Made by a program: the position numbers and the translations under genes. A stretch of 64,000 nucleotides of DNA, from assembly GCA_025594325.1 (NCBI GenBank), contig JANHCV010000001.1:1240001-1304000 (forward strand). Reading direction: 5' to 3'. The stretch comes from Blastocladiella emersonii ATCC 22665. Lineage: Eukaryota > Fungi > Blastocladiomycota. The notes under the pieces were generated by a model. That model saw nothing but the letters and a program-made list of their open reading frames with translations, was not told the origin of the DNA and did no database searches. This document shows positions 15,044 through 19,071 of the stretch, piece after piece (within the stretch, counting starts at the first letter, position 1; every line of letters begins with the position of its first letter).

Positions 15044-17423
15044 CTAGCCCGTCAACGGCGCTCCGCTCTGCCCCGCGGCCACAGCGGCGCTCTTCTCGAG
15101 CGCGGCGATGAGCCTTTTCTTGTGAAAGTGCATGGCGACGTAGAGCGCGGCAGGAACTAGCAGGCGATGCTGCTGAGTCAGCAACCGGATCGAGGAATCG
15201 TGCGAGAATAGAGCGAGACACGTACCCATGACAACGATCCCGGCGACCGAGCCAATGATCGCGTACATGGTGGTCTGGTCCTCGGACACGCGGCCCTTGC
15301 CGTCGCCCGGGATCGTCGGCTGCGGCTGCTGCGTGATCGTGTTGTTGGGGAGGACGACGTTCGAGACCCAGCCCGGGATCTGGTCTACACGGGCGTCGAA
15401 CGACACGTCAGTGGACCGTTATCCATTGAGAGCGCATCAAACGCGACGTACACGCGACGGGCAAGCTGTACGTGTAGACGCAGTCGCCCGCGGGCGCGCC
15501 GACCACGACGAGGTTGCCCGACGTCGCGATGGCCTTGCCAAAGTGGTCCGCGGCGTACGTCGATGCCACGGTACTCGCGTTGCTGGACGTGACAAGCGTG
15601 CCGAGCCAGTCCATGGGCACCGTCGCGTTGGTCGACTCGCGGATCACGTCCTCGAACCCATACACTTGCATGCCCGCGACGCGGCGGTGCATGAGGTACA
15701 CGGCGCCGCGGCCCGTAAGCCCCGCCGCGTCCGCGATCCACGTCGCGCGGCCGTCGGGCGTGCTGGCCATGGACCCGCCGAAGAAGCTGTGGTCGCGGCG
15801 GACCGGGTTCGCGACAGTTCCGTCGGCCGTCCACGCGTCCCACACACCAAACTTGTTGCTGATCATGCGCAGGACCTTGGCCGCGAGCCGCGGCGCGCCG
15901 ACGTGCAGGACGCCCATCTTGGACGAGGCGTCAATACCGAGCGCGAGGCCGAGACCGAACCAGTCCTCGTTGGTCCACGTCGACGGGAAGCCGACCTCGG
16001 ACCCGACGACCTGCGTAACGCGCGTGAACGTGTTGATGTTCTGGCGGTACAGCGTGACGATGCCTGACGAGCTGTTGGTCGCAGTGTCGACGCGGTAGTC
16101 GCGCACGGCCAGCAGCGTGTCGAGCGCGCCCGTGCCGGCCACGGCAAAGTCGATCCCGATGGTGCCGAGCGGGACGGGCGACTGCGCGCCGAGGAACGAG
16201 ACGCCCTGCCTACACGCGCGCGAGAGCGGTCAGGGTCGAACTTTCGCGACAACGGGGTGAGCTCGTACCATGTGTCGCTCGCCGACGTGAGGCGGAAGAC
16301 AGCGACGCCAAGATTGGTCGTCGACGACGTGGGCAGCAGCGGCCACTGACCCGCCGCGACATCGGCGCCGTACTGCGGCGGGTTTCCGTTCGACTTGACG
16401 CCGCCGGGCGCGCTGACGCCGTCCCACGCGCCGTTGCTCGAGACAAAGAGGAACGGGTTGGTCGTGTCGGGCGAAAAGCGGAGCTTGGACCCGAACCGGT
16501 CAAAGTACCGCCGCGACATGCCGCTGATCCGGGTCAGGTCGAGCTGGCTGTGCAGCGTCGCGGTGCCCGCGGCGTCGATCTTGTACAGCACGACGGACCC
16601 GTGGTACGGGTGCCACGCAATGTTGCGCAACGGAAGCGACGTGAAGTTGGTGAAGGAACGCCCCGGAACGCCGATGGCGAGCCAGTCGCCCGCGGCGCTG
16701 AAGTGCACGTCGTAGCCGAACAGGGTCAACGGCGATGAGGTGCCCGTGCCGTTCCACAGCTGGCCCGTCGAAGACTGGGCGAACGGGTCGGTGAGCGTCG
16801 TGACGAGCGTCCATGCGGAGGATGGCGGGTAGTTGGACAGCCGCACGTCCTGCGTCGTGGTCGTCGTGTTGGTGCACGACGTGGTTCCTGCAGATGATGA
16901 ACTCGCACTCGATGAAGTCGAGGACGCCGACGTCGCGGCAGTCGACGTCGCAGAAACTGTTGTTGCGGAAGCGGTGCTCGTCGGGGTCACGGTCCACGTC
17001 GCTGTGCCGTTGTTGCAGACCTGCACCGTGCTCGTGACGTTGACGGTCGAGACGTCGACTGACAAGTACGGCGCGCGGTACAGGTGTACTGACGTGTCCC
17101 ACGGTTGCCCGACTGCCTGTTTCAAGTTTGGGGTGGGTCAGCCTATGTTTTGTGTTCACTGAGCAGAGTCGGCGACGCACCATCCAAGTCCAGTTTCCGC
17201 GTGTGACTGAAGCGACCGAGTAGCCGAACATGCCACCCGCCCTTGTCGCGCATAGCGGGTTTCCGAGTGGTGGCACCGTTTTGGACGTGATGGCTGCTGC
17301 GGCTGGCGATAGTAACGAGCAGAGGGTGCCGAGGGCCACGCAGAGCCCGAGCGCGAAGCTTCTCAGGGCTTCCGACCCGTGTTCGCGGTTTCGTTTCATG
17401 GTATGTCTAGAGGATAGCTTCAT
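15044..17423 (-). CDS. Type-I membrane protein with signal peptide, FG-GAP-like beta-propeller repeats, one TM helix and a short cytoplasmic tail (706 aa model; exons 17181-17423, 16269-17116, 15452-16209, 15226-15384, 15044-15156)
   Basis: Four GT-AG introns give a phase-consistent 2121-nt CDS. Repeats: MFGYSVAS..AVGQP, LFGYDVHF..LAIGVP, RFGSKLRF, WFGLGLAL..LHVGAP, FFGGSMAS..GAVYL, HFGKAIATSGNLVVVGAP. TM AIIGSVAGIVVMVPAALYVAMHF, followed by HKKR. Confidence 0.8.
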
Positions 17424-17670: not shown

Positions 17671-19071
17671 ATGATGCCTCGCGCGCTCGGCCCGTTCCTC
17701 CGGCGCGGGCTCATCGCCTTTGTGCTCCTGTTCACCGTCCTCGGGCTCCTTTTCCGGTACATGTCGTCGGATCCGCAAGAGGAAGCGCGCACCGCCCCGT
17801 CCAAGCTCGACGAGACCGACTCGGTAATGTTCGCGCGGCAGTCGACGGCGCCGTGGCCGTACTGCGAGGCGCCGCTCACGGCGCCCGGTGAGACGGCCTC
17901 GCTCGACTCTGCGCACCGCAACGTCGCGTGGAAGGACACGCACGAGCTGCGGCACGTCTACGTGATGGCGCGCCACGGCGACCGCACGCCGACCATCTGG
18001 CCGAGCGAGGCCGACGGGTTCCACGCCAAGCCGTCCGAGGCGTCGATCCCCGTGTTCCCGCTCTACTCGCACTGCGACCCCGTCGTCGAGCCGTCGCGCA
18101 CGGGGCTCAAGCGGTACCCGGACCCGGGATGGAGCGGCAACTGTGTGCTCGGCCAGCTCACGGCGCTCGGCGCGCGCCAGCTGCAGAACATGGGCCGGTT
18201 CTACCGCCTGCGGTACCAGAGCCTGTTCAAGACCGAGGACGGGCACGCCACGTTCCGGAGCACCGACTTCAAGTGCGTAGCGCTCAATTTGCTCGGACGC
18301 TCAAACCCCGCTCACCTCGGTTCAATCTGTAGCCGCACGATTGCGAGCGCATGGCACTTTGCCCGCGGCATGTTCCACGGCTCGTCGCACCTCCCGGACC
18401 CCGCAAGCCTGATTATTACCGAGCACCCGCAGACCGACGCGCTGTCGCTCGCGAACCCCGCGCTCGGCCGGTCCATCTTCGCCGACTTTGACCTGACCGC
18501 GCTCTCGCTCCCGGCCGTCCGCGCCTTCCCGACGTACCCGTGGACCAACAGCGACCTGGGCCGTCTGTTCGACGTGTTCGCGACGTCGCGGTGCCAAGGC
18601 ATCAAGGCGTGCTTCCGGACCAACGCGACCAACGAGTGCATGTCCGACTCGGACGCGGACGCGCTGCTCAAGTGGGCGGACGCGCAGTTCAACCGCCTCG
18701 ACCCGGCGTACGTCGACAAGACGGGCGGGCGCGCGATCCGCGAACTCGTGCTCGCGCCCGGCCGCGCCGCCGACCTGCGCCGCGGCGTCTCGGTCATGGC
18801 TACCCACGACACGACGCTCGCGGTCGTCCTGCGTGCGCTCGGGTACGACATGCCCGCGTGGCCGCCGTACGCGAGCCATATCGCTTTCGAGGCGTGGCGG
18901 TCCCGCAAGGGCGACGGCGAGACCGTGTTCCGCGTCGTGTACAATGGCGAGGAGATTTGTGGCGCGGCGCGGCGGTGCCCGATCCTCATCTCGTGAAACT
19001 TCTTCTCTCGCGCACATAATACATGTCCTAGGTTTGTGATCGAGTGGTATCGGAGCGGCCAGCGCCCATAA
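17671..19071 (+). CDS. Histidine acid phosphatase (clade 2) with N-terminal signal anchor, 2 probable introns
   Basis: RHGDRTP catalytic motif, GQLTALG, spliced RSTDFNRTIASA, THDTT, WPPYASHIAFE. Confidence 0.9.

Follow-up and report, generated by a model that had tools for sequence, protein, structure and literature searches.

Within a 64,000 nucleotide (nt) window of the Blastocladiella emersonii ATCC 22665 genome (the whole stretch of DNA analysed; contig JANHCV010000001.1, positions 1,240,001 to 1,304,000) we identified a gene on the minus strand (15044..17423) that probably encodes a type I membrane glycoprotein whose ectodomain is a single seven-bladed propeller of the FG-GAP_2 type, and that would belong to a vertically inherited, lineage-specific family of surface receptors or adhesion proteins. 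The protein resembles an integrin only in its layout and is no orthologue of integrin alpha. The gene model, derived by hand, comprises five exons with 706 codons plus a stop and consistent phases, as in the original prediction, which was made from the DNA letters alone. The deposited protein, H9P43_000442 (hereafter P0001; 626 amino acids, aa), has four introns identical to those of our model, and the residue positions of repeats, segments and cysteines below refer to it unless exon 1 or an orthologue is named.

Superfamily placement and predicted fold

When the exons were searched separately against Pfam, exon 3 alone scored 22.8 bits to FG-GAP_2, just below the cut-off of 23, and the matching stretch, the sole one in the protein of the window, is blade 7. 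Searches of the PDB with single exons returned no real match, and a profile of four family sequences retrieved only low-complexity matches to KCMF1. A language-model atlas returned nothing but FG-GAP_2 leads below threshold (best score 0.83). At the level of the family, FG-GAP_2 (PF14312) was matched by 20 of 33 members (best E 1.3e-13), and no other Pfam family was matched by any of the 33. We also sampled 63 lower-tier HMMER matches from outside the family. All are FG-GAP_2 proteins, several of them with bacterial anchors (one is named, Reinekea), and hhalign aligned the family to them blade to blade over 351 columns with 99.9% probability (E 6e-33). Given the Pfam matches of 20 members and this alignment, the assignment of the repeats to FG-GAP is secure at the family level.

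The fold was taken from an AlphaFold2 model of the complete Sorochytrium orthologue (P0004), which is 47-49% identical to the protein of the window. Prediction with 33 family sequences gave a predicted local distance difference test score (pLDDT) of 81.7 and a predicted template modeling score (pTM) of 0.78; a model based on only 7 sequences (pLDDT 52.8) was not used. The P0004 model is a beta-propeller, which is the structural outcome that had been named beforehand as a check. A signal helix is followed by seven four-stranded blades over residues 25-567, and the N-terminal strand lies beside blade 7. The insert in blade 1 forms a long beta-hairpin (strands 81-93 and 118-130) with a low-confidence tip, which corresponds to the Ser/Thr-rich insert of the B. 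emersonii protein. An unstructured, low-confidence linker of ~35 residues precedes a single continuous helix (602-641) that comprises the transmembrane (TM) segment and the start of the tail. In a Foldseek search of the PDB, ranks 1-32 were all integrin alpha headpieces (E from 2.5e-10, 10-13% identity), and in the ESM Atlas every near fold neighbour was an FG-GAP_2 propeller (PF14312) of bacterial or viral origin.

We compared the family with the features used to recognize integrin alpha by Kang et al. (bioRxiv 10.1101/2020.04.29.069435), who require cation motifs (D/E-h-D/N-x-D/N-G-h-x-D/E) in some of the blades. The family has an N-terminal seven-bladed FG-GAP propeller on a type I membrane protein, as judged from the P0004 model, the Foldseek ranking and hydropathy, and the receptor architecture first proposed is upheld to this extent. 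A regular-expression scan of P0001, P0004 and the Allomyces orthologue P0006 found no cation-binding D-x-D/N-x-D/N-G loops, in agreement with the caveat already raised about missing DxDxDG calcium loops, and just 4-5 residues connect the FG strand to the strand after it. Neither the thigh, calf-1 and calf-2 domains (Integrin_alpha2) nor FG-GAP PF01839 was detected by Pfam in any of the 33 members, and G-F-F, the core of the K-x-G-F-F-K-R tail motif, occurs in 0 of 24 tails. With a deeper family profile, the PDB matches to integrins were marginal (alpha-L, E 0.013; alpha-4, E 0.017), compared with the E of 6e-33 to FG-GAP_2 proteins, and a generic FG-GAP_2 profile reached integrin alpha-M at 2e-18. 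Because the cation motifs, the legs and the GFFKR tail are all missing, we do not class the protein as an integrin alpha. By sequence comparison, the family is homologous to integrin alpha heads at the superfamily level and is much closer to the metal-free FG-GAP_2 type.

Transmembrane helix and cytoplasmic tail

Hydropathy analysis supports the one TM helix first noted (residues 576-598; 15131..15268, minus strand; hydropathy 2.2), the coding sequence of which is interrupted by intron 4 (15225..15157). Its inner half contains the fixed Pro of the family and its outer half a small-xxx-small motif. The helix is followed by a cytoplasmic tail of 28 residues (599-626; 15047..15130, minus strand) that begins with the membrane-proximal motif of the family, H-F-H-K-K-R-L-I-A-A-L. 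The tail had thus been recognized, though its length had been given as ~25 aa and its start as MHFHKKR. Neither KKxx at the C-terminus nor another recognised retrieval signal was seen in it.

Among the 24 family members that have a TM helix, 22 have a proline in the inner half of the helix, always at the same depth. The outer half has a small-xxx-small motif, likewise in 22 of the 24, and this is weak evidence because such motifs are common by chance in TM helices. Directly after the membrane, an H-[KR]…hydrophobic…L motif occurs in 19 of the 24, and the membrane-proximal consensus of the family is [KR]-[RH]-H-K-x-x-[LV]-L-x-x-L. The TM helix and the first residues of the tail are conserved between clades that are otherwise only ~30% identical. 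The signature of the family is a TM helix with a fixed Pro, after which comes a basic membrane-proximal helix, H-K/R…L…L.

Distribution and phylogeny of the family

An exhaustive profile search recovered 459 proteins at E≤1e-3, 31 of them at E≤1e-30. Named members come from the Blastocladiomycota (Blastocladiella, Catenaria, Sorochytrium, Coelomomyces and Allomyces), from Gonapodya prolifera (E 6e-93), from the aphelid Amoeboaphelidium occidentale (E 4e-69) and from Sanchytrium tribonematis (E 2e-39), and many further members are metagenome and run-assembly proteins. No core chytrid, non-flagellated fungus, animal or bacterium was named among the 30 best clusters looked up, and a word-index search with the family alignment added no further named taxa. 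Six locus tags of family members had no mention in the literature searched. The family is undescribed and, by the taxa of the best named clusters, its named members occur only in zoospore-forming Holomycota.

In the maximum-likelihood tree the Blastocladiomycota form a clade with support of 100/100, in which Blastocladiella adjoins Catenaria. The aphelid falls in a clade with environmental sequences (100/99), and a Gonapodya clade is also present. Sanchytrium and the distant relative P0041 are on long branches and their placement is unsure. The pattern agrees with vertical inheritance since an early holomycotan ancestor and disagrees with recent transfer.

Several members deserve separate comment. 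In P0041 (a EukProt transcript, 573 aa, E 7e-16) the FG-GAP_2 repeats are clear and a TM helix and basic tail are present, but the TM proline and H-K motif of the family are not; this protein may point to a wider eukaryotic distribution of single-pass FG-GAP_2 proteins. Two run-assembly proteins, P0015 (922 aa) and P0017 (888 aa), make up a sub-clade in which an extra Asn/Ser/Thr-rich insertion of ~250 residues separates blade 2 from blade 3 and the stalk ahead of the TM helix is Cys-rich. The Catenaria protein P0002 (BCR44DRAFT_91569) departs from all orthologues after blade 5 (residues ~480-554) and has neither blades 6-7 nor a TM helix, probably owing to a frame or splice error in the gene model. 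The UniRef cluster of the Allomyces protein P0006 (AMAG_00064) is labelled "DOMON domain-containing," and we considered this annotation and rejected it, as Pfam shows no DOMON domain in the protein and just a weak FG-GAP_2 match. The label looks like a mis-propagated name.

Gene model and exon 1

The splice sites rest on sequence signals, on the deposited model and on collinearity with the orthologues. All exons are on the minus strand: exon 1 (17423..17181, 81 codons), exon 2 (17116..16269), exon 3 (16209..15452), exon 4 (15384..15226) and exon 5 (15156..15044, stop included). The codon tally is 81+282+1+252+1+52+1+36 = 706. The four introns are 59-69 nt each and all are of the GT..AG type (4 of 4), and intron 1 contains a CTGAC branch-like site.

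The deposited model starts at an ATG that forms the last codon of exon 1, and for this reason the signal peptide, the first FG strand and a conserved Cys are all missing from H9P43_000442. The translation of exon 1 can be aligned with the N-termini of the Sorochytrium, Allomyces, Catenaria and Coelomomyces proteins, with which it shares the stretch PLC…GGMFGYSV…W.W. Given this alignment, the 706-codon model is better than the 626-aa one, and the longer exon 1 corrects a truncated deposited gene model.

The divergent neighbour (17671..18996, plus strand) encodes a histidine phosphatase of branch 2 (His_Phos_2, E 9e-21) that has a hydrophobic segment at its N-terminus. Its start is separated by 247 bp from that of the propeller gene, a short bidirectional promoter region common to both.

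Parts of the ectodomain

The predicted signal peptide (exon-1 residues 1-44; 17292..17423, minus strand) has a basic start, a hydrophobic core (residues 20-43) and, just ahead of where cleavage is likely, an AAA motif, consistent with the signal peptide initially assigned. Hydropathy in exon 1 peaks at 2.2 over residues 24-38, and the orthologues have N-terminal hydrophobic segments too. The end of exon 1 (17181..17252, minus strand), as aligned with the orthologue N-termini, encodes the conserved Cys58 of the PLC motif together with the first FG strand of blade 1 (GGMFGYSV…W.W).

The FG…GxP-type repeats number seven and not about six, as had been counted when the repeats were first recognized. 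The first starts in exon 1 and the others at residues 134, 209, 301, 368, 427 and 507. Blade 1 carries the Ser/Thr-rich hairpin tip (residues 41-95; 16835..16999, minus strand; 64% Ser/Thr), which lies in the first repeat interval, where it had been placed, and has a conserved Cys on either side (C35 and C82). This tip is probably O-glycosylated. The length of the insert differs among orthologues: Sorochytrium has a short one, and members of the aphelid and environmental clade have none.

The cores of the remaining blades, all on the minus strand, were located by motif position and conservation in the family. In blade 2 (FGYDV…AIGVPGR, 16661..16720) the F, G, G, P and R are 80-100% conserved, and in blade 3 (FGSKL…NGAWDG, 16421..16495) the loop equivalent to G259, W260, D261 and G262 of P0004 is 80-96% conserved. 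In blade 4 (IGIDFAV…LAVRDY, 16095..16160) the FG and GAP motifs are degenerate and an R-D pair is conserved in their place (R351, 96%; D352, 90%). Blade 5 (FGLGLAL…HVGAPR, 15888..15959) has three fully conserved positions (F400, G401 and P422, 100%), and blade 6 is FGGSMA…WIADAAG (15720..15782). Blade 7 (FGKAIA…VVGAPAGDCVYTY, 15468..15542), the one scored by Pfam (E 1e-4), includes the conserved C527. Overall, the most conserved ectodomain motifs of the family are the FG and G.P pairs, the blade-3 G-W-D-G loop and the blade-4 R-D. Two Cys columns are also highly conserved, exon-1 Cys58 before blade 1 (94%) and Cys527 in blade 7 (92%), and they probably form a disulfide that closes the propeller ring.

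The propeller is joined to the membrane by a Pro-rich stalk of ~39 residues (537-575; 15269..15452, minus strand) that spans intron 3 and contains some of the nine N-glycosylation sequons of the protein. The distance from the last repeat to the TM helix, estimated initially at ~45 aa, is about 40. Blade 7 and the TM helix are only ~35-40 residues apart, too few to hold thigh or calf domains. Their absence, also claimed initially, is borne out by Pfam, which matches none in the 33 members.

Proposed function and alternative explanations

The analysis shows the gene model, the fold, the superfamily, the phyletic range and the signature of the TM helix and tail. From these we infer that the family serves in adhesion or sensing at the cell surface, through ligand binding and coupling across the membrane. 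The whole ectodomain is one seven-bladed propeller, with the ring probably closed by the N-terminal strand tied to blade 7. Blade 1 projects a hairpin with a mucin-like tip, and the ~40-residue stalk, the TM helix and the short tail follow the propeller. The metal-free propeller may bind a protein or a glycan outside the cell, and the conserved TM helix together with the basic amphipathic membrane-proximal helix could connect it with a partner within or beneath the membrane. Such a layout might work like a legless integrin alpha or like LINKIN.

Zoosporic fungi have kept talin, vinculin, paxillin and IPP-complex scaffolds, and integrins are reported to be lacking in basal fungi (PMC5042518). 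What these integrin-less scaffolds attach to is an open question (PMC5042518), for which the family provides a concrete candidate. It could be the missing transmembrane receptor of the adhesion machinery, or one of several, in which case the TM helix and the H-K/R…L…L helix would be the contact to a second membrane subunit or to a FERM-type scaffold, for example talin. We hold this specific role to be rather improbable. If true, an alpha-like subunit would link the surface of the wall-less zoospore to actin. The work defines a conserved family of single-propeller, single-pass surface proteins in which the membrane and membrane-proximal segments are unusually conserved. Even without any link to adhesion scaffolds, this family, as yet uncharacterised, would mark the flagellated grade of fungi as a lineage.

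The original prediction had offered two origins for the protein, an integrin relic or a bacterial-type FG-GAP protein anchored to the membrane. As a true relic, an ancestral opisthokont integrin alpha would have lost its legs, calcium sites and GFFKR and would still serve talin/PINCH scaffolds. The type I topology, the seven-bladed FG-GAP propeller and the first ranks of integrin alpha heads in Foldseek agree with this, as does the finding that the deeper family profile retrieves only integrin alphas, at marginal E, and beta-dystroglycan from the PDB; the family is also found in lineages reported to have focal-adhesion scaffolds but no integrins (PMC5042518). However, the cation motifs that Kang et al. 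require in some blades are absent, neither Integrin_alpha2 nor PF01839 occurs in the family (0 of 33), only ~40 residues lie between propeller and membrane, the tail reads H-K/R…L…L and not GFFKR, and the nearest outside relatives are generic FG-GAP_2 proteins (63 of 63 sampled matches; E 6e-33, versus 0.013 for integrin). A relic is quite unlikely on this evidence, and we did not retain that claim. The second fits, as the protein is a membrane-anchored FG-GAP_2 propeller, and the original interpretation is supported in part. A recent horizontal transfer of a bacterial gene, or bacterial contamination, would agree with the FG-GAP_2 character of the nearest outside relatives, many of which have bacterial accessory domains (e.g., Reinekea). 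Yet four GT..AG introns interrupt the gene and its flanking genes are eukaryotic, at least four deep lineages have orthologues, related by a tree congruent with those lineages, and FG-GAP_2 proteins are known in other eukaryotes too. Because of the introns and the family tree, we reject recent transfer and contamination, to which we attach hardly any probability.

Two further explanations concern where the protein acts. It could be an FG-GAP protein of internal membranes (Golgi or endosome) involved in secretion or glycan handling, a role at internal membranes that has been proposed for some plant ITFG1-like proteins. Its layout equals that of ITFG1/LINKIN-type proteins (PMC4275582), and the basic, Leu-rich membrane-proximal motif could be a sorting signal. 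But none of the 33 members matches a Pfam family other than FG-GAP_2, the tail shows no KKxx or recognised retrieval signal, and nine sequons plus a mucin-like tip are typical of exposed surface proteins, even though they are compatible with internal residence. We regard an internal location as unlikely, if less so than the other alternatives. A sensor of wall or surface stress of the Wsc/Mid2 kind, in which the Ser/Thr-rich segment would act as a mechanical probe and the tail would signal inward, shares with our protein the type I topology, a segment of 64% Ser/Thr and a short basic tail. In the family, though, the Ser/Thr stretch sits at the tip of a hairpin and not in the stalk. Because the version in Sorochytrium is short and the aphelid and environmental clade does without it, this stretch is not a conserved element, and conservation lies in the propeller and in the TM helix with the tail. 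This explanation is very unlikely. A vertically inherited surface receptor or adhesion family with a metal-free propeller is thus the explanation we favor.

Comparison with known systems

A weak likeness to beta-dystroglycan extends over the stalk, the TM helix and the basic juxtamembrane stretch (residues 551-604, family profile positions 516-574; Pfam DAG1, E 0.08; PDB 9c3c_B, E 0.22). These matches score below significance and are probably compositional, and the beta-dystroglycan ectodomain is unrelated to the propeller of the family. The basic juxtamembrane cluster of beta-dystroglycan is a known binding site for FERM proteins.

The family resembles ITFG1/LINKIN in its general plan, as these proteins also combine a signal peptide and a single TM helix with seven atypical FG-GAP blades and a short tail, and have no integrin legs (PMC4275582). 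This likeness is one of layout, and no sequence link was found via Pfam, where only FG-GAP_2 was matched. ITFG1 is described as conserved in Metazoa. Compared with an integrin alpha head, the family is without Ca-binding loops, thigh and calf legs, GFFKR and a known beta partner.

The closest counterparts are the generic FG-GAP_2 (PF14312) propellers of bacteria, algae and giant viruses, which have the same blade repeat, D.FG.SVA…VGAP…Y.F, and the same short metal-free loops. Most of these proteins are long, with several propellers or domains, and are secreted, with bacterial anchors such as Por_Secre_tail, SLH and IPTL-CTERM. In the B. emersonii protein, by comparison, several blades are so degenerate that Pfam detects blade 7 alone. 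Unlike the generic proteins, the family combines exactly one propeller with a eukaryotic signal peptide, a single TM helix and a conserved tail of its own.

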